Positions 23,813 to 63,683 of a DNA stretch of 64,000 bases are shown here, one piece after another. Position 1 is the stretch's first letter, and the number at the start of each line of letters is the position of its first letter. The position numbers were made by a program, and so were the translations under genes. Source of the DNA: Piromyces finnis finn (lineage: Eukaryota; Fungi; Neocallimastigomycota); assembly GCA_002104945.1 (NCBI GenBank), contig MCFH01000019.1:434001-498000 (forward strand), given 5' to 3'. The notes below the pieces were generated by a model. That model did no database searches. It was not told where the DNA came from and was given only the letters and a program-made list of their open reading frames with translations.

Positions 23813-24433
23813 TTAAACCATGTTTAATGGACTGTTTTCTAATGAATCTTTCTTAGATCTCTTGACCCAAAGGAAGACACCAGCTGAAGAAAGAGCAGCT
23901 GCACCTGCAATACCGGCAGCAGCTAAAGTACCATCGGTACCTTCTTCATCATCAGCTGAATCTTCAGCATTGTCTTCGGCATCAAGATCATCAACATTCT
24001 TGATATCATCTCCACCTTCAACATCACCTTCATCATTGGCATTAGCATAATCATCTGAAGCTTCACCTGCATCAGCTGCATCAGCTGCATCATTTGGTGA
24101 TTCTCCATAATCATCGGAAGCTTCACCTGCTTCTGCATCTGGATTAACACCATCAGCATCACCTGGTGTAATGTCTGATGAATCTGGATTTTCATTTGAA
24201 TCACCAATTCCTGGAATATCATCAACATTAGCATTATCTGAAATATCAGCATTATCTAAAGCATCATCTTCCTTGTCTGAACCGATATCGGCAACATCTC
24301 CAACCTTAGATGGAATATCAGAAATGTCATCCTTAGTAGCTGGAGCAATATCTTCATCATCAGAAATTTCATTACTGTTAGCGAAAGCTAAAGCAGCAAG
24401 AGTAGTGAATAATAAAATACTTTGGAACTTCAT
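23813..24433 (-). CDS. Acidic secreted protein with C-terminal TM anchor, copy 1 (206 aa)
   Basis: N-terminal hydrophobic signal peptide, D/E-rich ectodomain with 2x GEASDDY, TM LAAAGIAGAAALSSAGVFLWV followed by KRSKK. Confidence 0.88.
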   Translation of the reverse strand: MKFQSILLFTTLAALAFANSNEISDDEDIAPATKDDISDIPSKVGDVADIGSDKEDDALDNADISDNANVDDIPGIGDSNENPDSSDITPGDADGVNPDAEAGEASDDYGESPNDAADAADAGEASDDYANANDEGDVEGGDDIKNVDDLDAEDNAEDSADDEEGTDGTLAAAGIAGAAALSSAGVFLWVKRSKKDSLENSPLNMV

Positions 24434-25811: not shown

Positions 25812-26432
25812 TTAAACCATGTTTAATGGACTGTTTTCTAATGAATCTTTCTTAGATCTCTTGACCCAAAGGAAGACACCAGCTGAAGAAAGAGCAGCTG
25901 CACCTGCAATACCGGCAGCAGCTAAAGTACCATCGGTACCTTCTTCATCATCAGCTGAATCTTCAGCATTGTCTTCGGCATCAAGATCATCAACATTCTT
26001 GATATCATCTCCACCTTCAACATCACCTTCATCATTGGCATTAGCATAATCATCTGAGGCTTCACCTGCATCAGCTGCATCAGCTGCATCATTTGGTGAT
26101 TCTCCATAATCATCGGAAGCTTCACCTGCTTCTGCATCTGGATTAACACCATCAGCATCACCTGGTGTAATGTCTGATGAATCTGGATTTTCATTTGAAT
26201 CACCAATTCCTGGAATATCATCAACATTAGCATTATCTGAAATATCAGCATTATCTAAAGCATCATCTTCCTTGTCTGAACCGATATCGGCAACATCTCC
26301 AACCTTAGATGGAATATCAGAAATGTCATCCTTAGTAGCTGGAGCAATATCTTCATCATCAGAAATTTCATTACTGTTAGCGAAAGCTAAAGCAGCAAGA
26401 GTAGTGAATAATAAAATACTTTGGAACTTCAT
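25812..26432 (-). CDS. Acidic anchored surface protein, copy 2 (identical 206 aa)
   Basis: Same protein as copy 1, 1999 bp away. One synonymous change seen (GCT>GCC). Confidence 0.88.
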   Translation of the reverse strand: MKFQSILLFTTLAALAFANSNEISDDEDIAPATKDDISDIPSKVGDVADIGSDKEDDALDNADISDNANVDDIPGIGDSNENPDSSDITPGDADGVNPDAEAGEASDDYGESPNDAADAADAGEASDDYANANDEGDVEGGDDIKNVDDLDAEDNAEDSADDEEGTDGTLAAAGIAGAAALSSAGVFLWVKRSKKDSLENSPLNMV

Positions 26433-28692: not shown

Positions 28693-29313
28693 ATGAAGTT
28701 CCAAAGTATTTTATTATTCACTACTCTTGCTGCTTTAGCTTTCGCTAACAGTAATGAAATTTCTGATGATGAAGATATTGCTCCAGCTACTAAGGATGAC
28801 ATTTCTGATATTCCATCTAAGGTTGGAGATGTTGCCGATATCGGTTCAGACAAGGAAGATGATGCTTTAGATAATGCTGATATTTCAGATAATGCTAATG
28901 TTGATGATATTCCAGGAATTGGTGATTCAAATGAAAATCCAGATTCATCAGACATTACACCAGGTGATGCTGATGGTGTTAATCCAGATGCAGAAGCAGG
29001 TGAAGCTTCCGATGATTATGGAGAATCACCAAATGATGCAGCTGATGCAGCTGATGCAGGTGAAGCTTCAGATGATTATGCTAATGCCAATGATGAAGGT
29101 GATGTTGAAGGTGGAGATGATATCAAGAATGTTGATGATCTTGATGCCGAAGACAATGCTGAAGATTCAGCTGATGATGAAGAAGGTACCGATGGTACTT
29201 TAGCTGCTGCCGGTATTGCAGGTGCAGCTGCTCTTTCTTCAGCTGGTGTCTTCCTTTGGGTCAAGAGATCTAAGAAAGATTCATTAGAAAACAGTCCATT
29301 AAACATGGTTTAA
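28693..29313 (+). CDS. Acidic anchored surface protein, copy 3 (identical 206 aa)
   Basis: Inverted copy, divergent from copy 2. Confidence 0.88.
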   Translation: MKFQSILLFTTLAALAFANSNEISDDEDIAPATKDDISDIPSKVGDVADIGSDKEDDALDNADISDNANVDDIPGIGDSNENPDSSDITPGDADGVNPDAEAGEASDDYGESPNDAADAADAGEASDDYANANDEGDVEGGDDIKNVDDLDAEDNAEDSADDEEGTDGTLAAAGIAGAAALSSAGVFLWVKRSKKDSLENSPLNMV

Positions 29314-32131: not shown

Positions 32132-34328
32132 TTAAATTTGTATATTATATATATTATTATTATTTAAATAATGGAAAAATGATGGTAATAACAATTGATT
32201 AATATTTGTATAGCTATCAAACCTCATAAAATTTTTTAAACTTATTTGAAGTATATTATCTATAATTCTTGTGTTTTCTATTATTTCTTGTTCTTTTGCT
32301 TTAATTTCTTCTTCATAATATTTATATAGATCACCACTCGTATTAAACCATTTCAACCATATCTTGACATCATTTTCATTAATTTTTATTATATCTTCAT
32401 GCCAACAAATATTGAAATTATTCATTGAATTATATAAATAACTATTAGAATAATCAGCATTTAGTAAATATATTCCTAATGTCAATAAAAAAAAGGATTT
32501 ATTTTCATTGTTAATTTCAAACCACTCTTTATTTGTTAGCTTAATGTTAGAAAAATTACTAAAAAGTTTATATAAATCTACTGTATCATTTTTCTCGATG
32601 ATGTACTTATAATTTAATATTTCATAATCATATGTTAAACCACTATCATAAAAATTTACAATATAATTTAAAAAATTTATATAGCTATTTGTATATTCCA
32701 TGTCAATATTTAAAGATAGTATTTTATTATTTTTATTTACTTTATTTAGTTGTTTTCTTATAAATTCCATTTTATCTTTATCGATTTTATCATTTCTGAT
32801 ATTTTTAAGGAATATGTAATTAAACTGAGAAATAATTGTTTTGCGAATAAATGTACTAAGATATCTTTCATAATATAAATGTCTTACTTTTTCTGAAACA
32901 AAAATTCCAAAATTAGTTCTCATATTATTTACAGTATATATTTTATGCATAATATACAATTTTCTTCGCAACTCTAAATTTTCATTTATATCATTGAATT
33001 CCTTTTTATTTAATAATTCATTATAATTTTTTGAATTATCTAAATTAATTATATCATTATTATTAATAAAATCATGTTTGTCATTTATTGGATTATGATG
33101 TGATTCTTTATTAACATCTTCTTCTTCATTAATAAGATTAATACTTATATCATCTAAACTTTTACTTTTTCTCAATTTATTATGATCATCTCCAAATAAA
33201 TCGGAATATTCATCATCAAATTTTTGAAGAATTATAATTAAATGTTTGAAAAATGTTTCATAATTACTTTTACCATTGCTTTCATCAATTAATTCTTTGT
33301 AAAATCTAATTCTATTTCTAAAAAAATGGGGGGTTTTATAAAGTTTAACGTTTAAAATTTTATATAAATATTGTAGAAAATCCTCAATTTCTTCATCTTT
33401 AATGCCATCCACATAATCAGAATAATCAAAATCAGGATCAAGATCGCCCAAATCACAATCCATACCTTGAAAAAAGCAATCCCAAAAACCATCAATTAAT
33501 AGATTATTTATAGATATTAAGCTAAAATTAACATTATCTACAAAGTCGTTTTCAAATACATCATTAAAACTGTTATAGATATAACTAAAAAAAAGATTGA
33601 TGTTATTATTAAAAATATGATTAATTAATGATAAATTATTTTTCATATTACATAAATTCTCCCTGCATTCTTTAGATTTGTTTTCTTCTTCTTTCTTTTT
33701 TACTATCAAGTTGTATAAATTTGACAAAAAGGAATAATCAAGGTAAAAGAAATTTAGATTATAAAAATTAATATCTCTTGGGTTGATACTTTTTAATTCA
33801 TAAGCCTTTTCATCTATTTTCATTTTGGCTATGTTAAGTTTTTTGCATATATTCATAATTTCGTCGTAATATAAATATGCATTTTTATTATCAATGTATA
33901 AAATCTTTGATATTGGTTTTGAACTTTCAAAACTATTCAATATATTAAAAAAATCATTACTATTTATTTTAACCCTAAAGAAATTCAATTTCTCTTTTAA
34001 AAAATTTATTGTACTTTTTAAATGCAAAAAATTATCTTTATTTTTAATATTAAAAAAGAACAGAATAATGATTTTTAACGAGTTTTCAATCATTGATTTT
34101 TTCTGAAATAAAAATGAACTTTTAGCATTAATATTATTATCTAATTCAGAATTGATATTTTTATTATTATAATTGAATTTCATAAGCTGGTGATTTATTC
34201 TTGGTAAACTAATAAATTTTATATATTCAATTACAAAGAAGTTTATAAATTCATCATTCCTTAAAAGTGTTTTATAAATGCTATTAATATTACTATTTAT
34301 ATCAAATTCTTCATTATCATCATCATCA

Positions 34329-34362
<34 letters not shown>

Positions 34363-35788
34363 AAGTTTCAAATAAATTATCGATAATACTAGAATATTGC
34401 CTATTTGCATTTGAAATACTTTGAATTTTTAAATTTGAATTTTTATTGTCATTATTATCTTTATTATTGTAGCTGCTCCTATTGTTTTCATCGTTATTTT
34501 TGGTATTTAGATAATCTATATACATTATATCTTTTTCTTCAATTTCCTTTTTTAATTTTATGCATAATAAATCTACTAAATATTTTATCTGACTGACGAA
34601 CGCGATTACATAGTTATCGGGATCTTCTTGATATAATTTATTAACCTTGGTAAAAGGAATTTCGTACTTTTCACTAATATAATATTTGTTTTTTCGTCGA
34701 AATGGGCATTGTATTTTTTTGCTTGAAAGGGAGCGTTCTAAATTGATAAGCTTATTTTCGAGTTTATTCTTACTAACAGAGTTAAAGAGATTAATAGTGT
34801 AATAGTCTATATTTAAAATGGTTTTATAATAGTGAATATTATATAATTTAGAGAAATCGTATTTCTCGATTAATAATTTTCTATTGTTGATGTTATTTAG
34901 AATAAAATCGATTTCTTTAAGAATGCTGTTGGAATAACCAAATTTGTACACTTTTATATGCTTAATTTTATTTACATGATTAAATATAAAGTCGTTATCA
35001 TTTCTAATATCTTCAATGTAATAGGCTTCAGAAATAATAGGTTCAATTTCCACTTTGTGTTTAAGATATGTATATGGAATCCAATCCATAAATACTTCCT
35101 TTCCCATTTCTTTATATATTGCTGTTTTTTCTATATATTTCCAGTAATACTTTATCCATTCTATATTATCTTTTTCTATAAAATAATCAAGAGAATCAAG
35201 CTCCAACTGTTCGTTTTCTATTAATTCACTATATTGGATGTTTTTCGGCGTTAAATACTCCTTTATCATTAATTCATACAAATAATGTTCTAACTGGGTA
35301 TTATCCTTTTCATTTTCTAATAATAAATTAACTTTTTTTGTTTTTATTCTTTCAATATATCTTTCTTTGGGATATTTTTCACGGTATTGAACAAGATATT
35401 CTAATAAAATTATATTTCTAATTTTAATCTTTAAATAATATTGGTAGAGCTTAATGTAAAATAAGAAATTAATATATTTATTATATTCTCCTATTTTTAA
35501 TAATTTAATTAAACATTGACGGCTATTTTTAAAAAAATCTAATTCTTTTAAACATTTTAAATTGATAATATACATTTGAAGAAGATCGTAAATATCATCG
35601 ATATTATCGAAACTATTTTTGTTTATCTCTCTAATAATATCACTATTACTAAAATATTGATCAAATTGTAATAAAAAAGGGAGAATATCATTTGTTTTTT
35701 TGCATGAATCCATTAAAGCATTTAATGAAGATTCTGATAATATTTTTTGATTATTTTCATCTTTACTTTTATATTCCTTCTCGTCCAT
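32132..35788 (-). CDS. Hypothetical protein, 1218 aa, single ORF, N/K/I-rich
   Basis: Uninterrupted 3.6-kb ORF starting with ATG. No family recognised by eye. Confidence 0.75.
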
Positions 35789-37899: not shown

Positions 37900-38520
37900 T
37901 TAGACCATGTTTAATGGACTGTTTTCTAATGAATCTTTCTTAGATCTCTTGACCCAAAGGAAGACACCAGCTGATGAAAGAGCAGCTGCACCTGCAATAC
38001 CGGCAGCAGCTAAAGTACCATCGGTGCCTTCTTCATCATCAGCTGAATCTTCAGCATTGTCTTCGGCATCAAGATCATCAACATTCTTGATGTCATCTCC
38101 ACCTTCAACATCACCTTCATCATTGGCATTAGCATAGTCATCTGAAGCTTCACCTGCATCAGCTGCATCGGCTGCATCATTTGGTGATTCTCCATAATCA
38201 TCGGAAGCTTCACCTGCTTCTGCATCTGGATTAACACCATCAGCATCACCTGGTGTAATGTCTGATGAATCTGGATTTTCATTTGAATCACCAATTCCTG
38301 GAATATCATCAACATTAGCATTATCTGAAATATCAGCATTATCTAAAGCATCATCTTCCTTGTCTGAACCGATATCGGCAACATCTCCAACCTTAGATGG
38401 AATATCAGAAATGTCATCCTTAGTAGCTGGAGCAATATCTTCATCATCAGAAATTTCATTACTGTTAGCGAAAGCTAAAGCAGCAAGAGTAGTGAATAAT
38501 AAAATACTTTGGAACTTCAT
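37900..38520 (-). CDS. Acidic anchored surface protein, copy 4 (identical 206 aa)
   Basis: Same protein as copy 1. Six synonymous differences seen. Confidence 0.88.
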   Translation of the reverse strand: MKFQSILLFTTLAALAFANSNEISDDEDIAPATKDDISDIPSKVGDVADIGSDKEDDALDNADISDNANVDDIPGIGDSNENPDSSDITPGDADGVNPDAEAGEASDDYGESPNDAADAADAGEASDDYANANDEGDVEGGDDIKNVDDLDAEDNAEDSADDEEGTDGTLAAAGIAGAAALSSAGVFLWVKRSKKDSLENSPLNMV

Positions 38521-51717: not shown

Positions 51718-54700
51718 GGCATCAAATATTTTAAACTTTATTATTAATTTAATTAAAATTATAATACATGTAATATAAAAATTAAAATAAAATAAAAATA
51801 AAAATAAAAAAAATATGTCTAAATAAACACAAATGAATAAAAATTGGGTATAATGTATTCTAGTAATTTTAATTAAAGTAAGAAAGCCACTATCATACTA
51901 AAGTATAATAATTGTATTTGACTTCCAATGGGACACCGAGCCAAAGATCAAAATTTTGTCATGGAACAAAATTATGATCTCCATTGGTTGCGCTGGCCCT
52001 CCTGGCCTGTCTTACTGTTTCTTCAGCATTGACGCTCTTGGATGTTGCTTCAAACCTTTTGAACATTGACCATTGCTGGCCAATAGCAAAAGGCATGATT
52101 TTGGTTAGAAGTTCCGCGGTTACCGTCAAGAATGGTGTTCCTTCATTAGTACCAGATTGAATCTGACGCTTACAAAGTTCTTTCCATTCCCTTGAATTGT
52201 AATTAATATTGTTAAAACTTCTTCCCCCAAGAAGGAATTTAAATATTTCACTGCACACACTAGAATAATCATACACATTAATATTCACCGGATTATTAGA
52301 ACTATTACTATCATTAACTAAATTACTATCTAAATTAGAATTATTATCTTCACTATTGCTATCATTACTAATATTATTATTTCTATTATTGTTATTATTA
52401 CTATTGTTACTATTACTATTGTTATTACTACTATTGTTACTATTACTATTAATGTTATTACTATCTCTACTGATATTAACATTTTCATTATTATTGATAG
52501 GACTATTGGAATTACGTTGACTGAAAAAATTTAATAGCTGGACTATGGAATCATAATGTTTAATACGGATATCTCTAAATGTTGGACAATCTAATAACCA
52601 ATGTTTAATACTTTGATCTCCACACTTGCAACATGGACAGTAGTTAGGACAAACTGGATCAACAAATTTGGCAGCTTTGGCAACTCTAGCATCCAACTTA
52701 TATCCGCTTCTTGCTTTCAATAGCCAGTAGAAGCCATAGGCAAACTCTGGGTATTCATAACATAATTTAATAAAATCTTTAGTTTCACTAAATTTATTAT
52801 CGTCATAATATTGCGCTTTGATTGAATTCCCTTTGAGATCTTTCCAATAAAAGTTTTTAACTGCTTTAACATCTCCATGTTTCTTTAGTTTTTTATCAAG
52901 TGTCCTACTTGATTTGCACCACGTGTATTTTCTAAATTTAGGAATGTAATTGACAAGGTGTGAGATAATACAATTTGAGTTTTTCCATTTGTTAAAACAT
53001 CTAACCTGAGCTAACGCACATTTGGCTGACAATGGAGGAATATTCAAATCTTTTGAAATAGAGTATAAAGATATAAACGATACAGCTTTATGAACTCCGG
53101 CAACCCATCGTATTCCTTTGTTAACATGCTTCTGAGCAATCCTAGACCTAGCTTTGTTGGATCCAAGTAATGGTGCAAAGTATGAAACTCTGCTAATCAC
53201 TTGTGAGTTAAGTACTAGTTTTTTGAAAGGAATAGGAATATTAGGATTTCTTAAGAATTTACTGACTGAGAAAAGCCCTTTCAAAACCTTGTTATTAAGA
53301 GCTTTAATTACTGGTTTAAGGGACAGATTCTTATCAAATGGAACACCAAGATAAGTATAACAATCAGTAGTTGGAATGGGTTGTCCTGCTAAGTAAAATG
53401 TTGGATCTCTCTTGTTCTGATTTTCTATTGATTCAGGACGAATCACCATCGTTGAACATTTCTGGATACCAAATTCCATTTCATTATACAATGCCCATTC
53501 ATTAACTCTTCTAAGCATCTTTTTTAAGCATCCTCTTGTTGGAGCACAAATAACTATATCATCTGCAAAAAGTCCACCACAGCATCGAGTGTCACCTAAA
53601 CTGACTCCTAGATCTTCGCACTCTTTAAATATATCATTAATAAAGAGATTAAAGAGAATAGGAGAAAGAGGGCATCCTTGACGGACTCCTTTCTTCACAT
53701 CAAAAGATTTCGAGAATTGACCATCTAATTTGACATTAGCCTTAGATGTTAAATATAAATTTTTGATGAATTGTAAACTCTTACCTCGGATTCCTAAACA
53801 ATCTAATTTATGGAGAATATTACCGATTGGGACTGAATCGTATGCTTTCCTGAGATCTAAAAAGGCCAAATATGTCTCTTTATTATCTAATTGACGTCTA
53901 CGGCATATTTCTTGGATTGAAATGAAAAGACTGATACTTTCTTCCTTTTTTCGAAAACCAAATTGTTCAGGTCTAATGAAATTATTCTTTAGACCATATT
54001 CTGAAATTCTAGTGGTGACAATTTTGGAAATCAACTTAATACCATTATTGATAAGTGATATACCTCGATAGTTATCACAATCTGTCAAATCTCCCTTCTT
54101 AGGAATAGAAACAATACTGGATTCATTCCATGAGTTGGGGAAGTCTCCATCCCAAATACGGTTAAATAATTTAAGAATAAAATTTAAACCATGAGCGTCA
54201 TTATCTGAAGTGGTATTACCAGAAGAATTATTATCTGTAGCATTATTAGAATCATTACTTGATGGAATTAATGCTTTGTAAAATTCAATTGGAATACCAT
54301 CCGGACCTGATGCTTTATAATTTGGAGTAGAGAGGATAGCTGACTTGACTTCATCAATACTAATATCTTGGTTGATATTCCACTCATCAAGCATAGGAAG
54401 TGAAAAACGTTTATTCGTTGGTTCTTCATACCAATGCTCCAAATCAAGACTTACACCACTTGGATCTGATGCAAGGTTTTCGAAATGATCATGCCACACA
54501 TCTAGTTGTTCTTCCGTAGTAACAACTAATTCTCCATTTTTATTTTTAATTGGTTGAGCAATAAAGAAAGAGTCTTTTCCAATTTTTGCAGTTTTCTTGA
54601 TCCATTTCCAGGCCTTCTTAGGATTATGACTCTTCATATACTCACATCCTGTTTTAATCCAATGAAGATATTCTTGCTTCCTAAATTCATTACATCTTTT

Positions 54701-55643
54701 GTGGATGTAATCAATGAGCTTACGGTAGATTTTAATTCTTTTAATAAATTCATCTATATCATAAATTCTTTCTTTTTTAAATCTCTTATACAACTTCATT
54801 TTGATTTTTTGGAGATTAAAAATTTGTTGTGAAATATGAAATGAAGACTTTATAACATTATTTGCTGAAGTAATACTGAGCTCGTCTGCAATTGAAAAAG
54901 CAGTTGAAGTAAACTCTTTGGAAAGTTCATCTGTAGAAACATTAGGATCGTTGAATTTTGCTGAAAGTATTTGGAATTTATTATGACTGAGAATAGATTC
55001 CTTTTCCTCAATACATTTTAATCTATTCCATTTCAGAATTTTCTTAGGAACATTAAAGTCATTAGAAAAATCTTCCATAGGAATAATTTTACCATTAATA
55101 AGAAGTGGCTTATGGTCTGATACAGGATAAAAATTATTTATAAATGATCCTGAGTGAATAAGATCTTTCATCTTCGAATTGATAAGAGCATGGTCAATGT
55201 CGGAAGATTGTTCACCTCGAGTCCAAGAGATAGTCGACCCTCTAAGCGGAAGAATTTCCCAATCTCCTAATCCATTAGTTGATAACCAGTTGGATAATTT
55301 TACTTTAGACATATTAAAATCACCAACAAGAATCGATGGATGGGATGAATGAGTTTGTAACCACAAGCGAACTTCTAACTTTGCATGATCAACATAGATG
55401 TTGTGATGACTATGAGGCATATAAACATTACCAATCGAGCATTTGAATCTATTCCAAAGACTAAAAGTATAAATAGAAATAATATACTTTCCAGAGAAGT
55501 TTTCAAGTGAGGCTTGACATGAATTATGAAAACCTAAATATAAACCTCTCATTCCCGGAACTGATTCGTCAGCTTTCTTGAAAAAGTGTCTATAGTTTCG
55601 CAAAGTAACACGACAAGGATAATCTTTTTTTACGATTCATCCT
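51684..55643 (-). mobile_element. Near-complete APE-endonuclease/RT non-LTR retrotransposon (LINE copy E)
   Basis: Poly-A end (poly-T on + to 51714), same 3'UTR as A and B. Candidate TSD CTATTATTT at 51675-51683 and 55644-55652. Confidence 0.95.
51959..55603 (-). CDS. LINE ORF: APE endonuclease (N-terminus apparently missing) + RT + Cys/His knuckle, 1214 aa
   Basis: APE motifs NVYMP, ILVGDFN, SWTRG...SDIDH and SDHKP, plus the full RT motif set. The listed start is a TTG and there is no in-frame ATG at the 5' end. Confidence 0.92.
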   Translation of the reverse strand: MRNYRHFFKKADESVPGMRGLYLGFHNSCQASLENFSGKYIISIYTFSLWNRFKCSIGNVYMPHSHHNIYVDHAKLEVRLWLQTHSSHPSILVGDFNMSKVKLSNWLSTNGLGDWEILPLRGSTISWTRGEQSSDIDHALINSKMKDLIHSGSFINNFYPVSDHKPLLINGKIIPMEDFSNDFNVPKKILKWNRLKCIEEKESILSHNKFQILSAKFNDPNVSTDELSKEFTSTAFSIADELSITSANNVIKSSFHISQQIFNLQKIKMKLYKRFKKERIYDIDEFIKRIKIYRKLIDYIHKRCNEFRKQEYLHWIKTGCEYMKSHNPKKAWKWIKKTAKIGKDSFFIAQPIKNKNGELVVTTEEQLDVWHDHFENLASDPSGVSLDLEHWYEEPTNKRFSLPMLDEWNINQDISIDEVKSAILSTPNYKASGPDGIPIEFYKALIPSSNDSNNATDNNSSGNTTSDNDAHGLNFILKLFNRIWDGDFPNSWNESSIVSIPKKGDLTDCDNYRGISLINNGIKLISKIVTTRISEYGLKNNFIRPEQFGFRKKEESISLFISIQEICRRRQLDNKETYLAFLDLRKAYDSVPIGNILHKLDCLGIRGKSLQFIKNLYLTSKANVKLDGQFSKSFDVKKGVRQGCPLSPILFNLFINDIFKECEDLGVSLGDTRCCGGLFADDIVICAPTRGCLKKMLRRVNEWALYNEMEFGIQKCSTMVIRPESIENQNKRDPTFYLAGQPIPTTDCYTYLGVPFDKNLSLKPVIKALNNKVLKGLFSVSKFLRNPNIPIPFKKLVLNSQVISRVSYFAPLLGSNKARSRIAQKHVNKGIRWVAGVHKAVSFISLYSISKDLNIPPLSAKCALAQVRCFNKWKNSNCIISHLVNYIPKFRKYTWCKSSRTLDKKLKKHGDVKAVKNFYWKDLKGNSIKAQYYDDNKFSETKDFIKLCYEYPEFAYGFYWLLKARSGYKLDARVAKAAKFVDPVCPNYCPCCKCGDQSIKHWLLDCPTFRDIRIKHYDSIVQLLNFFSQRNSNSPINNNENVNISRDSNNINSNSNNSSNNNSNSNNSNNNNNRNNNISNDSNSEDNNSNLDSNLVNDSNSSNNPVNINVYDYSSVCSEIFKFLLGGRSFNNINYNSREWKELCKRQIQSGTNEGTPFLTVTAELLTKIMPFAIGQQWSMFKRFEATSKSVNAEETVRQARRASATNGDHNFVP

Positions 55644-56270: not shown

Positions 56271-56999
56271 TTAAACCATAGTAATTTGAGTACGAACACT
56301 TTGTAAACCAGCGCGCTTAGATTTCTTGATGTAATAGAAGACACCAGCAGAAGAAAGAGCAGCGGCACCAGCAAGACCACTAGCAACCTTTCCACTAGTA
56401 GAAAGACCTTCATCTTCATCATCAGAAGTAACATCATTGGCATTAGCACTGTCAATACCATCAACTTGGTCAATACCATCAGCATTACCGTAATCATCAG
56501 AAGCTTCACCATCATCTACAACATCTTGTGGGTTGACATCAGCATTATCAATTTGATCAATTTGATCAGTGCTTCCATAATCATCTGAAGCTTCACCGTT
56601 GTCAACATTTTGACCGCTAATACCTTCAGCACTTGGTGGAGTAACACCAGTGTTGTCAGAGTATGGTGGGACTGAATCAACACTTGGATTAGTGTTAACA
56701 GAATCAGTAACTGGGTTAGAGTTAACAGAGTCCATAGATGGTGGTGGAATAGAATCAGTAGTTGGGACATTGTTATCAACAGATGGGAAAGATGGTGGAA
56801 CAATAACTGGAGTTTCTGGAGCTTCTGGAGTTTCTACTGGAGCCATGTTGGTATCAATTTCTGGTTCAGAACTTTCTCCAAAACCATCTTCAAGTCCAAC
56901 ACCACTAATGTTGTCTTCAATATCAGAAACATCTAAACCGTTACCTAAAGTTAAGGTAAGAGTGGCAGCTAATAATAATAAAGCGTTGTAGAATTTCAT
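56271..56999 (-). CDS. Acidic, Pro/Thr/Ser-rich anchored surface protein, distant paralog (242 aa)
   Basis: Signal peptide, mucin-like segment, 2x GEASDDYG, TM GLAGAAALSSAGVFYYI followed by KKSK. Confidence 0.88.
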   Translation of the reverse strand: MKFYNALLLLAATLTLTLGNGLDVSDIEDNISGVGLEDGFGESSEPEIDTNMAPVETPEAPETPVIVPPSFPSVDNNVPTTDSIPPPSMDSVNSNPVTDSVNTNPSVDSVPPYSDNTGVTPPSAEGISGQNVDNGEASDDYGSTDQIDQIDNADVNPQDVVDDGEASDDYGNADGIDQVDGIDSANANDVTSDDEDEGLSTSGKVASGLAGAAALSSAGVFYYIKKSKRAGLQSVRTQITMV

Positions 57000-59900
57000 T
57001 TTGAATTTATTTTGATTTTATATTATACAATTAAAAAATAATTATTGTTTTGATTGATTGTTTTATAATCGTTATTTGTTAATTACAATTTCCTTTTTGA
57101 ATTTCCTATTGGTTAATACTATACAATTTCTAAATAAAATATTATATATATAACTTATATTGAAATGCCAAACTAATAAGTATATATATAATACAAAAAA
57201 CTATTTCTTTTAGCAAAAAGAAAAAGAGTTCTTTTACAAATTTTACAATATTAATTAATATCAATAGATAAAAAAAATTGATGAAATAAAAAAAAGAGAA
57301 AATTTTCTTTTTATATATGATTTTCTATTAATAAATTAATAATATTAATATTAATATTAATATTATTATTATGATTATGATTAATATTAATATTATTATA
57401 GATAGTTAATTGTCAATAGTCAATAGATTAAAACAACATCGTCATGACTAAACTATTATATATTAAAATATATTAACTTTAATTTATTAAGAATGATAAT
57501 CCAATGAGTTGATTTATTTATAATTATTTATTAATATATTAACAAGTATTTAAAAATATATTATTAAAATATTATAATATATTGAAAATTATACTCTCTT
57601 ATTTTATTTCATCTATCATTGATACCAAATAAACTAATTATAGTAACTCTAGCCTATCACAAAATCCCTTAGGTATACTATTATACTATTTAAATAAATT
57701 AAATATTTCCCATATAATATTATATATTGGTCAAATATATTACAAATTGAATGATTATGTTACATAGAATAAAAAATGAAACATATTTTTTAATACAGCA
57801 ACTTTAAAAATATTAGTTATTAAAATTAGAAATATTAATAATTAAAATTTTTTATACTTAAAACAAATATATTAGGTAAAAACCAAACTTTATTTATTAA
57901 TAAAATTAATATTATTTTTTTGTGAATCGAAACTTTAATTCTATTAAATTACCTTTTTTAATTTATTTTATTATATTAAAAACGATCAATTTTCTATATA
58001 TAAAAAATGTTTAATCATGTTTAATAATGTATTAAGATTGTATTAGAAGAAAATAAAATGTCTTAGAAAATAGTAGCTGTTAGTTGTTATCCTGATGCCG
58101 ATGTCCTCATTCATTAGAAAACATTTTTTACAATAAAAATTAGTTTAATAAACTATCATTAATAATTGTTTAGTTTTATAATCAATAAAATATAATTAAT
58201 ATAATTATATGACAGAGGAGTTTTAATGTACAAAATCAATATTTATAACTAAATATATTAGAATATTAAAAGTAATGTATTACAATAAAATGATTTACGG
58301 TAAATATTTATTTTTAAATGATAAACAATTTTGTTTGCTTTAATTGTAATTGTGGAAATTTATATACTTTATTATATTATAAATATATTATAATATATTA
58401 TATTTTATATGGTACAATAATTTTATAAATAAAAATAATATTTTTAAATAATATGAAATAATAGTTATTATTTAATAGTAGGGTTATTATTTATTATTAA
58501 ATTTTTTTTATTTTTTATTAAATACTTTTTCTATTGTTATTCCAATTTATTTAATAATTATTTATTTAATTATTTATTTAATTATTTATCTATTTAATGA
58601 TTATTTATTTAATTATTTATTTAATTATTTATCTATTTAATGATTATTTATTATTTAATAGGAATAATTACTTTTTTTAATATTCTTTTGACATCAACAA
58701 ATGTGGGTCAGATTCTATTTATTTATTAATAAATTTTTTAATTAAAAGAATTATTTTTTTATTATTCTTTCCACTACCATTTTATTTAGTTAATATTTAT
58801 TTAATAATATTTCATATCAATGATAATAGTTTAAAAATGATAGAATTTAAAGTTTAATATAAATTTTTTTTTTTTTACAAATTTTGTGCCGCATTTTAAA
58901 AACGGTGAACATTTTTAATATTCTATAATTAAAAAAAAGTGCGGCAAATTATTACATTTTTCTACATTTCTATTTTAAAAAAAAAAAAAGATAGTAAAAG
59001 GGAATTTAAAATAAAATAAAACTGGAGGTATAGTTTTTTAAAAATAAATTATATAAAATATACTAGTATTATAAATGATAATACAAATCCTTTTTGTCAT
59101 TATATAGATTTATATTTTAATAAAAAAAAAAAAAAAATGGCTAGATTTATAAATTGTGTTAATAAATGTCCATGGAAAAAATGATGACTAATTTATTACA
59201 ATATAAATTATGTACTGTAAATTTTTATTGGTTAAGTTTTGTAAAAAACATATACATTACTATTATAAAAAAATGACCTTTAGTAAAGGGTTAGATATAA
59301 TAGTAATTTATGGTGGATAATACATATATACATACATACTTTATCCACATTTTATTCTAAAAAAAAATTGACAGTTTCTATTAATCTCCAATATATATAA
59401 TATTTAAAACTTTGTTTTTTTTCTTTTTAAAGAAATAGTATAACACATATAATTTTAATCACCATTAATTTATTAAAATGTTTATAATGACCTTTAAAAA
59501 ACTTTTTTTTTTTTTTAATTACATAAAATATTAACAAAGTAGTTCTCCTATATTTTTTTTTATTATTTTATTTCAAAAAACTAAATATATTTAATTTTAA
59601 AGCAAGCAAAATTCAAAGGATTCCTTAATAAAAATTAACAGAGATTTTATTGTAAATAATGAAGATACGGAAGCTACTATCACACTTTTCATATAGCAAA
59701 AGTGGTTTATTTTATAGATATTCATACTTTATATAAATCACAATTATATATTAAAGTATACTTTTTTTTTTTTTATTAAACTTTTTTAATATTCAAAGAA
59801 CAAATATTTTTTTTACTATGATTATTATTATTTGAGTATTTCTTTTCTTTAAAAATTATTATTAGTAGTATTAGTATTATTAAGCGTATTATTATTATGT

Positions 59901-60445
59901 TAATATCGTTATTTTACTTTATAAGCATTTTTAATAAATATAATTGATAATAAATAAATGGGATGTTTGTAATATGTAATATGATAAAGAAGAAAAAAAA
60001 AAAGATTTTTATTTTTTTTCTATATAACAATATAATATTACAATTATTTAACATCTATATATAGATATTTTATTCTTTGATTTGAGAATTAAATTTATCA
60101 TAGAATGAAAATATCTATATACTAAATAAGGTTTTATATATATAGATAGATATATATCATATTAATTATCCAAAAAAAAAAATAAAATATATTATTCTAT
60201 TTTCTTTTTCTATAATACAGATTACTCTATAAAAACAACACTTTTTTTCTTTCTATAATTTTTTTTAAAAAAAAAAAAGTTTGAAATTTAATCTATAATT
60301 ATAATTTTTAAATAGAATATGATATATTACTCTAAAATTGGTCCAATATAAGAACCAATAAATAATAAATATATATATTATGTAGGTAGGAAAAGAATGA
60401 GAGGTAAAATAAAAAAAAAAAAAAAAGAATTAAATTTGTTTGTTT

Positions 60446-62572
60446 TTAAATAATAATATCTGTTTTTTCCAATTCTCTATCTAATTTTTCTTTCAAGTGA
60501 ATTAATGGATTTCTAAATAATAAACCTAATAATAATGGTATAATGGTATGGGATAATAACATCATCATATAATAAATATAATTATTTTTGTATAATCCAC
60601 CAATAGCTTCTCTTAAAATATTCATTGCTGGATAAAATGGCATGATAGGTTGTAAAACGGCAAAGGCTCTTGGTAATAATTCAATTGGGAATGTACCACC
60701 TGAACCAGCAACTTGTAAAACCATAACAACAATAGAAAAGGCTTCACCAACCTTACCGAAAGAAACTGTGACAGAATATACAAATAACATAAATACAAAA
60801 CTTGACATCATAATGGTAATAATGAATAAGGGAATATTAATGACTTGAACTTTAAGTAGAATATCACCAATTCCAATAATGAGACCTTGAGTGACAGCCA
60901 TACTACCAAATAATAAAAATCTTCCTAAAAATTTTTGATAATTTCTTAATTTTTCGGTTCCGATGGTTGTATTATCAATATCTGTTTTAACAATAGAAAT
61001 AAGTAAAGTGCATCCAACCCAACAAGCTAAAATTGTATAGAAGGGAGCCATCTTTGAACCATAAGTATTAATATCATATAAATCAATTTCATTTGTTTTT
61101 ACTGGAGTGGATAAAAAGTTGGCAACTTCTACTGGATCATTTTCGATCAAGTTTACGAATTTGTCGTACATTTCACTTTCCTTTTCTCCACTTAAAGAAT
61201 CTACAATTTTATCGATTTCGTCTTGAAGTTTTGAAAATACATTATCCATATTATCGGTTAAATCCTTGGTATTACCTAAAGCTTTTATCATACTATCTAA
61301 AGCTTTATCAGTCTTTCCCGTGGCTTTACTGACACCTGATAATAATTCATTAATACTATCCATGGATTGATTGGCATTGGTATAGGCACTATTCAAATCA
61401 CCTTTTATAGAATCACGATAGGCACTGTAGACTTCAACTTCTTCAGTTTGAATAGCTTTCAACTTGTTTTTAATTTCTTTTATTTCATTTTTAGTTTGTT
61501 TTGTATTGCTAATGATCTTTTGGGTATCACCGATAGAATCTGATATTTTTTGAAGTTTATCTTGTATACCGTCTAATTGAGGTAACTTTAAATTTTGACC
61601 TACTCTATTCAAGATACTTTTGATTTTATCGATTTTTTCGGATTTTTCTTTTAATTGCTCTGATAATTCGTTCATTTTGTCTTTCATAATTTCTTTGTTA
61701 TCTTCGAGAGGGCTTTCATCAAACGAATCAATAACATTGGCAATATCTTTACTATCATCTTTAATGGAAGAAACAGTTTCATCAATATCATTAGTTAAAT
61801 CCTTAAAGGATTTTAAAGCATTTTGCATATCTTTGATTCCATTTTGCGTGGTTCCACTAATGTTATCAACGGTAGGAAGTAATTCTTTAAAGGCATTAAG
61901 AGAGTTGTTGGTAAGATCTGCTGTAATTTCCATGGTTTTAAATATAGCTCTTAAATCTGAAATATTTGATTTAGCTTTATTTAGTTTTTCAACAAGTTCT
62001 TCGGTGGTACGAGCTGCCTTTGTTACCAAACCTATATCTTCTGCTGTATTTAATACTTTATATATAATAGCGTTAATGATATTTTGATTGATGGTGTTTT
62101 GAATGGCACCAACTGCCTTATTTACAATAATGGGTGCAATTGGATTTTTCTTGTGATTAACATAAAAATCAAATTGAGGTCTTTCAATTTTCTTTGTATC
62201 AAATATTGTGATGAGTTTGGTACTAAAGTTTTCTGGAATGACTATTTCTCCGTAGTATTCACTTTTTTCTAACATATGTTTGGCATCCTTTTCATTTGTA
62301 AAAATCCATTTCATATCCTTATTATCTTTTAAACCATCCACTACTAAATTTCCCATATTTATTTCTTCCCCAAGGATTACTGTTCCATTATCTTTATTTA
62401 CAATAGCTATTGGTAATTTACCAGTATTACCATAAGGATTCCAATTGGAATCAATATTAAGCCAAGCATAAATACCTGGAATAATTAATAAACCTACTAA
62501 AATTACAACAGCAGCAGGTCTTTTACTAATTCTTTTAATATCATCTAAAAATATAGATATAATTTTTTTCAT
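60446..62572 (-). CDS. YhgE/Pip-family membrane protein (708 aa), intronless, bacterial type
   Basis: N-terminal IPGIYAWLNIDSNWNPYGNTGKLPIAIVNKD, long coiled-coil middle, then C-terminal YGSKMAPFY..L..WVG and LQVAGSGGTFPIELLP with multiple TM helices. This matches the YhgE/Pip architecture. Confidence 0.92.
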   Translation of the reverse strand: MKKIISIFLDDIKRISKRPAAVVILVGLLIIPGIYAWLNIDSNWNPYGNTGKLPIAIVNKDNGTVILGEEINMGNLVVDGLKDNKDMKWIFTNEKDAKHMLEKSEYYGEIVIPENFSTKLITIFDTKKIERPQFDFYVNHKKNPIAPIIVNKAVGAIQNTINQNIINAIIYKVLNTAEDIGLVTKAARTTEELVEKLNKAKSNISDLRAIFKTMEITADLTNNSLNAFKELLPTVDNISGTTQNGIKDMQNALKSFKDLTNDIDETVSSIKDDSKDIANVIDSFDESPLEDNKEIMKDKMNELSEQLKEKSEKIDKIKSILNRVGQNLKLPQLDGIQDKLQKISDSIGDTQKIISNTKQTKNEIKEIKNKLKAIQTEEVEVYSAYRDSIKGDLNSAYTNANQSMDSINELLSGVSKATGKTDKALDSMIKALGNTKDLTDNMDNVFSKLQDEIDKIVDSLSGEKESEMYDKFVNLIENDPVEVANFLSTPVKTNEIDLYDINTYGSKMAPFYTILACWVGCTLLISIVKTDIDNTTIGTEKLRNYQKFLGRFLLFGSMAVTQGLIIGIGDILLKVQVINIPLFIITIMMSSFVFMLFVYSVTVSFGKVGEAFSIVVMVLQVAGSGGTFPIELLPRAFAVLQPIMPFYPAMNILREAIGGLYKNNYIYYMMMLLSHTIIPLLLGLLFRNPLIHLKEKLDRELEKTDIII

Positions 62573-63683
62573 TTTTCCCTAAATAATAATATAGGTATGT
62601 GTGTGTGTGTGAAAGTATTTCTATAAAAACTTTTAATTTTTAGAATTTTTTTTTATTCTTTTAATATATCATTTATTTATTGATAATAAAATCTATCTTT
62701 ATAATTTTTATTTTTTAATATTTAAGGAATTATGCTTTTTTTTTTAAGGTAAAAAATGGTAGGAGTAAAGCAAGATTCCTTTATAAAAGTGTTTTTATTT
62801 CCCCTAATGAATATTTTCACTTAACCTTTTTTTTTTTGTTTTTTTTTTAAAGTTTTTTAAATTCTTTTTTTTATTGTCTTTTTTTATTATATTTATACAA
62901 TCCATTAAAAAAAAAATTCTAGTTTTTTTAAGTTGTCAAAATTCATTTCTGCTTTCAACAATATTAAATTTAATAATAATATAATATTAATATATAATAA
63001 TATATAGTAATATATATTAGAATAAATACCACAACTTTTATTTTAATTTATTTTATTAATGAAATTTTTTTATAAAAATTAATTTTATAGACTTAATTTT
63101 GTGTAACATCATATAAATAATGATATTAAGAAATTTTTTATTAAATTTTTTAATTTTCACATGTATTTTTTTAAAAAAAAGTCTTTTTTCATATGATAAT
63201 TAAAATAATTTCATCTATAGATTTATTAATTCATTTATTTATTTTATTAATAAAAAAGATATTTTTATATTTAATAAAACTAAATATAAAAAAATGTTAA
63301 GAAAGCATTTACATAATAAATTATACTTCGCTATACTATTTATTTATTAGTAAAAAAATAATAAATGAAATAGGATAATTGCTATTGTCATCCTTACCAT
63401 CCTTTTTTTTTATTCTACTTTGTATTTTCTGCCTTTTAAAGAAATATCTTTTGTCAAGTAATATTAATATTAAATTTTTTGCACAATACCTAAATTAAAT
63501 TTTTTATTATTTTTTGTTGACAATTGTTATTTTTAATTGAAACATTAATATATTATTTTAAATTGATATTTATATTTTTATATATTTTATAATACATTAA
63601 TAATATTAAAATAATATATTATATTTATTATTTAATATAATATTAATATATATTAAATTATTTTTTTGTGCTTTATCACAATA

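Follow-up and report, generated by a model that had tools for sequence, protein, structure and literature searches.

Identity of the reading frame

How a gene of a bacterial membrane-protein family came to reside in the genome of a gut fungus, and what its product may do there, are the questions raised by one frame in the window, i.e. in the whole 64-kb stretch of DNA that was analysed:

60446..62572, minus strand: YhgE/Pip-family ORF, complete and intronless, 708 aa, identified from length and scaffold as GenBank ORX51100.1 of Piromyces finnis

The best overall explanation, to which we assign a probability of about 0.7, is that ORX51100.1 is a functional descendant of a stand-alone YhgE/Pip gene that was transferred once and then duplicated.

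The ORF is a single ATG-to-stop frame with no internal stops. An initial annotation, made from the sequence only, had described it as complete, intronless and carrying YhgE/Pip signatures at both ends, and profile search bears this out. The N-terminal model TIGR03061 (pip_yhgE_Nterm) matches aa 11-172 with 141.6 bits and the C-terminal model TIGR03062 (pip_yhgE_Cterm) aa 484-686 with 125.2 bits, the curated cut-offs being 96.15 and 102.2 bits, respectively. Since both models are past their cut-offs, the ORF belongs to the YhgE/Pip family; the same two models are matched by all 66 aligned relatives. Pfam matches are ABC2_membrane_3 (E 1.8e-20) and DUF3533 (34.5 bits, cut-off 27.6). Sequence search of PDB with the protein returned coiled-coil noise only, and 15 PADLOC matches (LmuB, JetC, ZorA), all located within the coiled-coil stalk described below, were judged compositional. 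Transcription is possible: four putative RNA runs from three studies, their RNA status being guessed, contain 0.76-0.87 of the words of a stretch of which the ORF accounts for 0.76.

Relationship to EsaA and phage receptors

The protein had also been called EsaA-like and phage-receptor-like. This holds at the level of the family but not for EsaA itself. The EsaA equivalog model TIGR03929 scores 67.6 bits (E 1e-18), below its cut-off of 122 bits, and no ess/esx genes (essA, essB, essC, esxA) were found at the loci of four close bacterial relatives or in the window. On these two grounds, identity as the type VII secretion subunit EsaA was rejected. What is shared with EsaA is an N-terminal region, homologous at superfamily level, and a long ectodomain whose helices run "there and back again"; the tip of EsaA has a beta domain, whereas that of the fungal protein is predicted to be all-helical.

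In EsaA, the tip is used by phages as their receptor (10.1101/2020.08.17.254201). Enterococcus PIP_EF has six membrane spans, with a large extracellular part between TM1 and TM2, and is implicated in entry of phage DNA via a variable region of this ectodomain (PMC4999554). Lactococcus Pip, PIP_EF and Bacillus YueB have their topology, conserved ends and variable middle in common with the fungal protein. They are larger, roughly 900-1100 aa as compared with 708 aa. Their receptor role reflects exploitation by phages and is not a known function in the cell, and we know of no YhgE/Pip protein with a demonstrated substrate. Nothing shows service as a phage receptor in the fungus.

Genomic setting

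We examined the surroundings of the ORF, for which host-type flanks and absence of bacterial neighbours had been claimed. The relevant features are:

60100..60445, minus strand: 3' flank, 13-16% GC, with a T-run straight after the stop codon; likeness to orthologous loci stops here
62573..62950, minus strand: 5' flank, very AT-rich, with no alignment to orthologous loci
51959-55603: LINE near the ORF, with its upstream ORF at 56271-56999

Both parts of the claim are corroborated. GC content is 28-31% in the ORF versus 13-17% in 3 kb on the low-coordinate side and about 1 kb on the high-coordinate side. The remaining large ORFs of the window are eukaryotic (glycogen phosphorylase, two LINE-type reverse transcriptases and two class C GPCR-like proteins), and none adjoining our ORF is of bacterial type. 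At the level of the assembly, the ORF is placed within the 857-kb contig MCFH01000019.1 of GCA_002104945.1, which carries fungal genes and repeats. In other gut fungi, the flanks of related loci are similarly poor in GC (8-16%) and LINE fragments are shared, and metagenome contigs join relatives to such flanks.

Synteny with other Neocallimastigomycota, proposed as a further check, is not seen. Comparison of the window up to 62950 with loci of Piromyces sp. E2 and Neocallimastix lanati by blastn and tblastn revealed similarity only over 60435-62576 and LINE fragments, with no neighbouring genes in common within 10 kb. Orthology is therefore taken from the tree alone. Base composition was rejected as a signal of transfer. 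Donor-type genes have 28-29% GC, the same as the fungal copy, so that composition cannot speak independently for or against a given origin; ORF and flanks differ simply as coding and non-coding DNA do.

Bacterial origin

To place the fungal proteins, phylogenetic trees were constructed. In a careful maximum likelihood tree, 23 fungal rows form one clade (support 100/100, stem 0.37), which lies nested among Clostridia proteins: it is joined at 99/98 with eight bacterial rows, all from metagenome-assembled genomes (MAGs) of gut Clostridia. A tree of 118 rows gives the same placement. Within the 31-row clade of fungi and Clostridia, support is as low as 23-60 and singles out no exact bacterial sister. 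Among GTDB species genomes, the closest relatives occur in MAGs of gut Clostridia (53%, 52% and 48% identity), followed by gut Saccharibacteria (41-45%), all others reaching 38% at most; these Saccharibacteria carry the same narrow YhgE/Pip subfamily as gut fungi. The eukaryote-labelled ones among the best 120 matches, most of which have no taxon label, are exclusively gut fungi.

The Clostridia proteins (e.g. P0017, P0012-P0016) are 53-56% identical to the fungal one over full length (704 versus 708 aa) and agree with it in termini, invariant residues and domain order. Like the fungal gene, theirs are single genes without partners. They lie at genuine bacterial loci: that of P0017 (MAG RGIG4471, roe deer omasum) adjoins rpmG-secE-nusG-rplK, and a class I release-factor gene is found two genes upstream of that of P0014. 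The fungal copy differs in its eukaryotic host, in its flanks of 13-16% GC non-coding DNA and retroelements, and in its multiplication. The suggestion of horizontal transfer from a Firmicute-like donor thus finds support in the trees, which point to one ancient transfer from AT-rich uncultured gut Clostridia to an ancestor of Neocallimastigomycota.

The call as such is already published. ORX51100.1 is catalogued as a xenolog from Eubacteriales in a supplementary table of Ciach et al. 2024 (PMC11291939), in "Cluster_15" together with ORX75554.1, ORY86437.1, ORY20582.1 and ORY86436.1. The row gives 708 aa, scaffold length 857073, 0 introns, 6 TM helices, ABC2_membrane_3 and K01421; the entry is a table row only, its family name limited to Pfam and KO, with no discussion and no structure. 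To this row our analysis adds a wider set of paralogues, a donor narrowed down to one subfamily, estimates of selection and a predicted fold. Our literature searches found no paper joining YhgE with Neocallimastigomycota, or "phage infection protein" with gut fungi, and the preprint of Murphy et al. 2019 mentions the family neither in its text nor in its supplement.

Expansion and selection in gut fungi

We wondered if the gene is a lone acquisition of P. finnis. Following the suggestion to look for orthologues in other Neocallimastigomycota, we found orthologues or paralogues in Piromyces sp. E2, N. lanati, N. californiae, Anaeromyces and Orpinomyces. N. lanati has six paralogues; of the three in Piromyces sp. 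E2, two share one contig, and consecutive accessions (ORY86436/ORY86437 and KAG4108832/KAG4108833) indicate tandem pairs. Judging by tree and accessions, ORX51100.1 is no lone acquisition: a single old transfer was followed by expansion to at least six paralogue lineages, some of them in tandem.

Selection was measured as had been proposed. Against the Piromyces sp. E2 orthologue, dN/dS is 0.146 at dS of about 0.95, with regional values of 0.10-0.12 in membrane parts and 0.16-0.28 in the stalk. As estimated from these substitutions, the ORF is under purifying selection within fungi. An alignment of 17 fungal with 49 bacterial sequences has 41 family-invariant columns. Fungal copies keep every one of them, and only two columns are diagnostic of the clade. 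Conservation peaks in the membrane and alpha/beta domains. One N. lanati paralogue has a GC3 of 61%. Its reading as a sign of high expression is unsupported, because Wilken et al. 2019 (PMC6883316) report a preference of gut fungi for AT-rich codons that extends to their highly expressed genes.

Predicted architecture and fold

Structure of the protein was predicted with AF2. Confidence in the model is intermediate (pLDDT 73.7, pTM 0.48; pLDDT 45-85 in the stalk). Its parts are as follows:

62447..62572, minus strand: aa 1-42, basic amphipathic N-terminal helix (aa 2-16, K+R 6/18) and TM1 (aa 19-42), from AF2 (pLDDT 89), hydropathy and charge count
62057..62542, minus strand: TIGR03061 N-terminal domain (aa 11-172), including a membrane-proximal alpha/beta domain (aa 54-138)
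61133..62047, minus strand: predicted "there and back" helical stalk (aa 176-480), with helices 190-282 and 361-459 and a helical-bundle tip at about aa 250-400
60467..61063, minus strand: C-terminal bundle (aa 504-702) of five membrane helices and short re-entrant helices, predicted type V ABC exporter (ABC-2) fold
60680..60715, minus strand: family-invariant motif Q-x-A-G-S-G-G-T-F-P-x-E (aa 620-631), pLDDT 94-95

Hydropathy, model and charge distribution yield a topology of one TM helix, an extracytoplasmic region of about 460 aa and five further TM helices. TM1 is likely to act as signal anchor in the fungus. The ectodomain is predicted to form a hairpin stalk, about 90 residues long and with a helical bundle as its cap. 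In structure search, the tip matches helical bundles and the alpha/beta domain resembles 3cni. The stalk is the least conserved part of the protein, both in consensus and in regional dN/dS. The motif of the C-terminal bundle is present in all 17 fungal and all 49 bacterial aligned sequences; by the predicted topology, it would lie on the extracytoplasmic face. Further invariant polar residues are found in the stretch of the N-terminal domain (N59, D61, N84, N139, K141, N143).

Structural comparison points to an ABCG-like fold of type V ABC exporters for the C-terminal membrane domain. Top Foldseek matches of the model are ABCH-9C and KpsM. The VIA comparison gave Z of 16-19 and rmsd of 3.3-3.5 Å over about 232 residues for membrane domains of Cdr1, ABCG2, ABCG1 and ABCG5/8, Z of 18.9 and rmsd of 13.8 Å over 350 residues for ABCH-9C, and weaker values (Z 11-13) for KpsM and Wzm. 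The predicted membrane-domain fold is common to ABCG2, ABCG5/8, Cdr1, ABCH-9C, KpsM and Wzm, and the Pfam match falls in the clan of ABC-2 permeases. Sequence identity is 8-16%. Unlike these exporters, the ORF protein has a 460-residue ectodomain inserted after TM1 and lacks a nucleotide-binding domain, fused or adjacent: Pfam and TIGR profiles detect none in the protein, and no ABC ATPase gene was found nearby at the four bacterial loci or in the window.

Two further ideas about targeting were rejected. Both termini of ORX51100.1 are like those of its bacterial sisters, which speaks against an added signal or eukaryote-specific sorting tail. Depletion of N-X-S/T sites in the loop, considered as proof of luminal exposure, is a weak trend in fungal copies (observed over expected from composition 0.58 versus 0.88-0.96) and absent in ORX51100.1 (6 versus 6.0 expected).

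Possible function and alternative explanations

From fold resemblance and conservation, the following mechanism can be proposed. A cytoplasmic basic helix would precede TM1, which as signal anchor would direct the protein into the ER and on to the plasma membrane or an endomembrane, leaving the stalk outside or in the lumen. The protein would probably work as a homodimer, as does its relative EsaA, and would retain a partner-independent activity of the donor protein. At the outer leaflet it would most likely bind or move a lipid or lipid-linked hydrophobic molecule. Such a ligand is favoured by the predicted position of the GSGGTFPxE motif and of the invariant polar residues, which is on the outer face. 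As a whole, the mechanism is tentative and its odds are well below even.

The same fold would suit a true ABC transporter, whose permease pairs with an ATPase encoded elsewhere, either a fungal ABCG-type nucleotide-binding domain or a transferred bacterial ATPase. Superposition of the membrane domain on those of ABCG, PDR and ABCH proteins extends to an interface-like N-terminal helix, which is nearly invariant (M1, I4, F8, D11). However, no ATPase gene adjoins the gene in the window or at the four bacterial loci, and we know of no use of ABC ATPases by EsaA, Pip or YueB. Moreover, the invariant polar residues, as far as conservation and model indicate, are mostly on the outer face. We consider such pairing unlikely.

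Slightly less probable still is a surface stalk serving as adhesin, spacer or decoy for phages or bacteriocins on wall-less zoospores or rhizoids, with the membrane domain as a mere anchor. Ectodomains of relatives are surface-exposed and exploited by phages (PMC4999554; 10.1101/2020.08.17.254201), and the stalk evolves fastest of all parts. Nevertheless, its dN/dS is that of purifying selection, and nothing at the coarse pairwise level hints at an arms race. A plain anchor would not require that conservation be strongest in the membrane and alpha/beta domains, and phages have no known reason for binding a fungus.

It could also be argued that the ORF is a decaying relic, functionless in the fungus and intact by chance, as expression of ORX51100.1 is only putative. 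This is very improbable: a 2.1-kb ORF is intact at dS of about 0.95 with dN/dS of 0.15, every family-invariant residue is kept, several paralogues are retained across genera, and the putative RNA runs contain the ORF. Least credible of all is contamination or a chimera, i.e. an ORF of rumen Clostridium wrongly joined to fungal DNA: absence of introns, 53-56% identity to Clostridia proteins and GC equal to donor genes would agree with it, but the ORF lies inside the 857-kb fungal contig, members from at least five independently sequenced gut fungi form a single clade on a long stem, metagenome contigs tie relatives to flanks with 8-16% GC, evolution inside fungi is evident from dN/dS of 0.15 when two Piromyces species are compared, and the 44-47% divergence from the nearest bacterium argues against any recent contaminant.

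Implications

Transfers from rumen Clostridia to gut fungi are numerous; for this reason, and because ORX51100.1 is already tabulated, there is little gain in it as a further case of transfer. The YhgE/Pip family is exploited by phages and type VII secretion. Here, purifying selection has preserved a YhgE/Pip gene, and the gene has multiplied, in a eukaryote that has no peptidoglycan, type VII secretion genes or co-transferred partner. From its persistence in such a host, it is likely that YhgE/Pip proteins have a core activity which is self-sufficient and directed at a target common to bacteria and fungi, e.g. membrane lipids.

A bolder reading, which we hold to be improbable in its full form, is that gut fungi domesticated and multiplied an ATPase-less surface protein of ABC fold that acts alone at the outer face, e.g. 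by capturing and passing lipids or sterol substitutes. It would answer a need common to sterol-free anaerobic fungi and lipid-scavenging Saccharibacteria. Either way, the fungal setting narrows hypotheses on YhgE/Pip function and offers a clean heterologous test case. If the reading of domesticated lipid handling is true, the fungal copies would provide a system free of partners in which to find out what YhgE/Pip proteins do in the cell.

Genomic setting of the YhgE/Pip gene

The initial annotation described an intact gene with YhgE/Pip signatures at both ends, lying in low-complexity host DNA away from any bacterial neighbour. All these points are borne out:

60446-62572 (-): YhgE/Pip ORF (ORX51100.1), 708 aa, uninterrupted from ATG to stop

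Its product scores above the cut-offs of both curated NCBIfam models, TIGR03061 (141.6 bits, cut-off 96.15) and TIGR03062 (125.2 bits, cut-off 102.2), and gives Pfam matches to ABC2_membrane_3 (E 1.8e-20) and DUF3533. Both defining models match and the topology is as expected, which places it in the YhgE/Pip family. GC content of the ORF is 28-31% as against 13-17% in the DNA on either side, which is made up of A/T runs and simple repeats. No bacterial-type gene adjoins it among the large ORFs of the 64-kb window; the others are eukaryotic (glycogen phosphorylase, two LINE reverse transcriptases and two class C GPCR-like proteins). The public collection has a single exact match to the protein, on contig MCFH01000019.1 (857,073 bp) of NCBI assembly GCA_002104945.1. 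Given this setting and the related genes in other gut fungi described below, contamination or misassembly is considered extremely improbable.

The gene has been catalogued before. Ciach et al. 2024 (Evol Lett, PMC11291939) list ORX51100.1 of Piromyces_finnis in their supplementary "Protein summary" table, where it is assigned to Cluster_15 with Pfam ABC2_membrane_3, KO K01421, a length of 708, 0 introns, 6 transmembrane helices, a scaffold of 857073, Eubacteriales as approximate donor and WolfPSort "E.R."; the other members of the cluster come from Anaeromyces robustus (one) and Neocallimastix californiae (three). Agreement in protein length and scaffold size identifies it as the gene studied here, whose HGT status has therefore been published already, if only as a table row. 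Several paralogues carry the NCBI name "YhgE/Pip C-terminal domain". Among the papers searched, none mentions both "YhgE" and "Neocallimastigomycota", and the preprint of Murphy et al. 2019 makes no mention of the gene. Transfers from rumen Clostridia to gut fungi are a well-known class of event.

Two further features of the window were noted:

23813-24433 (-), 25812-26432 (-), 28693-29313 (+), 37900-38520 (-): four copies of a 206-aa ORF
32132-35788 (-): 1218-aa ORF

The four copies are 100% identical, lie within 15 kb and have about 40% GC; a signal-peptide-like start precedes an acidic Asp/Glu/Ser-rich body, with no Pfam match. The 1218-aa ORF has a GC content of only 20% and no Pfam match at E <= 0.001.

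Bacterial origin

Matches in a word-based protein search include a Piromyces sp. E2 protein (77% identity), Neocallimastix lanati and Orpinomyces proteins (63% and below) and uncultured Clostridia proteins (53-56%). Phylogenetic trees were constructed from 118 rows and, more carefully, from 48 rows (LG+C20+F+G4, ultrafast bootstrap/SH-aLRT). In the latter, fungal sequences form one clade (100/100, stem of 0.37 substitutions per site) nested with eight bacterial proteins (99/98); the larger tree gives the same picture. Branching order among these eight, and hence the closest sister, has support of just 23-60. The proposed HGT from a Firmicute-like donor is supported. Two of the sister proteins, both from gut Clostridia, were examined for gene context, and both sit in ordinary bacterial loci: P0017 beside rpmG-secE-nusG-rplK-rplA, P0014 immediately after a PF09992 gene and two genes downstream of one for a class I release factor. 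At 28%, the GC content of the donor genes matches that of the fungal copy, so base composition is uninformative on origin here.

Among GTDB genomes (one per species), identity is highest in three animal and human gut MAGs of Clostridia/Lachnospiraceae (53, 52 and 48%); gut Saccharibacteria follow with 41-45% and one "bacterium" with 38%, and all remaining matches are at or below 34%. This scarcity of close relatives places the donor in a narrow gut subfamily. The Saccharibacteria members (sheep jejunum, ileum and others; loci L016, L018-L021, L094) are nested among Clostridia sequences, which suggests that the subfamily has moved between bacterial phyla in the gut.

Expansion and retention in gut fungi

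Copies were found in other Neocallimastigomycota, namely Piromyces sp. E2, N. lanati, Orpinomyces, A. robustus and N. californiae, and the fungal clade comprises at least six lineages. Six copies are present in N. lanati (proteins P0007, P0011/P0121, P0018/P0133, P0023/P0135, P0028 and P0035) and at least three in Piromyces sp. E2, where a single 65-kb contig carries two. Adjacent accessions on shared contigs (ORY86436/ORY86437 and KAG4108832/KAG4108833) indicate a conserved tandem pair. The simplest history is a single transfer that predates the divergence of the genera, with duplications afterwards.

The N. lanati paralogue P0007 (L006 10001-12142, L007 854-2992, L008 804-2945; present in 48 collection blocks) has 45% GC and 61% GC3, compared with 11.5% GC in its flanks and 21% GC3 in the window copy. 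High expression is an unsupported explanation of this codon shift, since gut-fungal genes are reported to use AT-rich codons even when highly expressed (Wilken et al. 2019, PMC6883316). LINE fragments of the window (51966-52495 and 57247-57366) recur at 65-74% identity near the YhgE/Pip genes of Piromyces sp. E2 and N. lanati and near that of a metagenome contig (L005 3196-4341; L006 3608-3728 and 6781-6940; L009 3166-3264); one retroelement family populates these regions.

Comparison with the Piromyces sp. E2 orthologue gave dN 0.138, dS 0.945 and a ratio of 0.146, that is, purifying selection, with regional ratios of 0.10 (N-terminal part), 0.16 (stalk, the helical hairpin region) and 0.12 (C-terminal membrane part). 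In an alignment of 17 fungal and 49 bacterial sequences, 41 columns are invariant and only two tell fungi from bacteria. Fungal termini, including the ...LEKTDIII tail, are the bacterial ones, with no eukaryotic signal or tail added. The protein has been preserved almost unchanged, and a functionless relic is highly unlikely. Four runs from three studies, RNA by a tool's guess, contain 0.76-0.87 of sampled words of window 60100-62900, of which the ORF makes up 0.76; a DNA run contains 0.97. This fits transcripts over the ORF but is not proof of them. Local sequence comparisons covered the window up to 62950.

Predicted structure

An AlphaFold2 model from the 66-row alignment (mean pLDDT 73.7, pTM 0.48) predicts:

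aa 2-16: basic amphipathic helix
aa 19-42: TM1
aa 54-138: alpha/beta domain
aa 190-282 and 361-459: long helical hairpin, shorter helices at its far end
aa 504-702: five further membrane helices and short re-entrant helices (pLDDT 85-95)

Charge counts are compatible with an N-in/C-in topology placing a 460-residue region outside. In an exhaustive structural search, the membrane parts matched membrane domains of Candida Cdr1, ABCG2, ABCG1 and ABCG5/8 (Z 16-19, rmsd 3.3-3.5 A, ~232 residues); ABCH-9C reached Z 18.9, but with rmsd 13.8 A over 350 residues. Residues ~250-400 aligned to four-helix bundles and the alpha/beta domain to a Thermotoga ABC-2 protein domain (3cni). Best Foldseek matches were ABCH-9C and KpsM, with 3cni fifth. 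Invariant polar residues of the alpha/beta domain (N59, D61, N84, N139, K141, N143), together with Q620 and E631 of the motif Q-x-A-G-S-G-G-T-F-P-x-E, would lie on the extracytoplasmic side by the inferred topology.

N-X-S/T sites in the loop (window aa 43-500) are fewer than composition predicts in the 17 fungal sequences (observed/expected 0.58), with no depletion in sister bacteria (0.88), other bacteria (0.96) or the window copy itself (6 vs 6.0). The fungal deficit may mean that N-glycosylation of a loop in the lumen is selected against, but the sequences are not independent.

Possible role

The initial annotation also pointed to EsaA and phage receptors. Family membership stands; identity with EsaA does not, as the EsaA model gives 67.6 bits (cut-off 122), no T7SS gene neighbours the bacterial homologue in the four loci covered, and EsaA is described with a beta domain at its tip whereas the modelled tip here is helical. 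The layout of the PIP_EF phage receptor (6 spans, large TM1-TM2 loop, conserved ends, variable middle; PMC4999554) is shared; a phage-receptor role in a fungus has no evident rationale.

TM1 would probably act as a signal anchor; the protein would therefore enter the ER, leaving the stalk exposed to the lumen or cell exterior, in agreement with the WolfPSort "E.R." prediction of Ciach et al. (PMC11291939). We tentatively propose (probability about 0.3) that the protein acts, independently of ATP, on a lipid-like molecule at the outer leaflet and that the stalk forms a variable and probably dimeric projection. This guess is made because the conserved core comprises the membrane domain and the membrane-proximal domain, because proteins that export lipids, sterols and lipid-linked polymers have this fold, and because no partner was co-transferred.

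The predicted fold is also that of type V ABC exporter permeases, which require a cognate ATPase. The protein studied here has no nucleotide-binding domain, and neither in four bacterial loci nor in the window does the YhgE/Pip gene have an ABC ATPase gene beside it. That the protein pairs with an ATPase from another locus is unlikely. Slightly less likely still is a stalk serving as surface adhesin, spacer or decoy.

The transfer is real and was correctly interpreted by the initial annotation. New here are a single origin followed by expansion into at least six lineages, a narrow donor subfamily that also occurs in gut Saccharibacteria, and measured purifying selection on a protein with a predicted ATPase-less ABCG-like fold. 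The main value of the gene is as a partner-free means of learning what YhgE/Pip proteins do in the cell.
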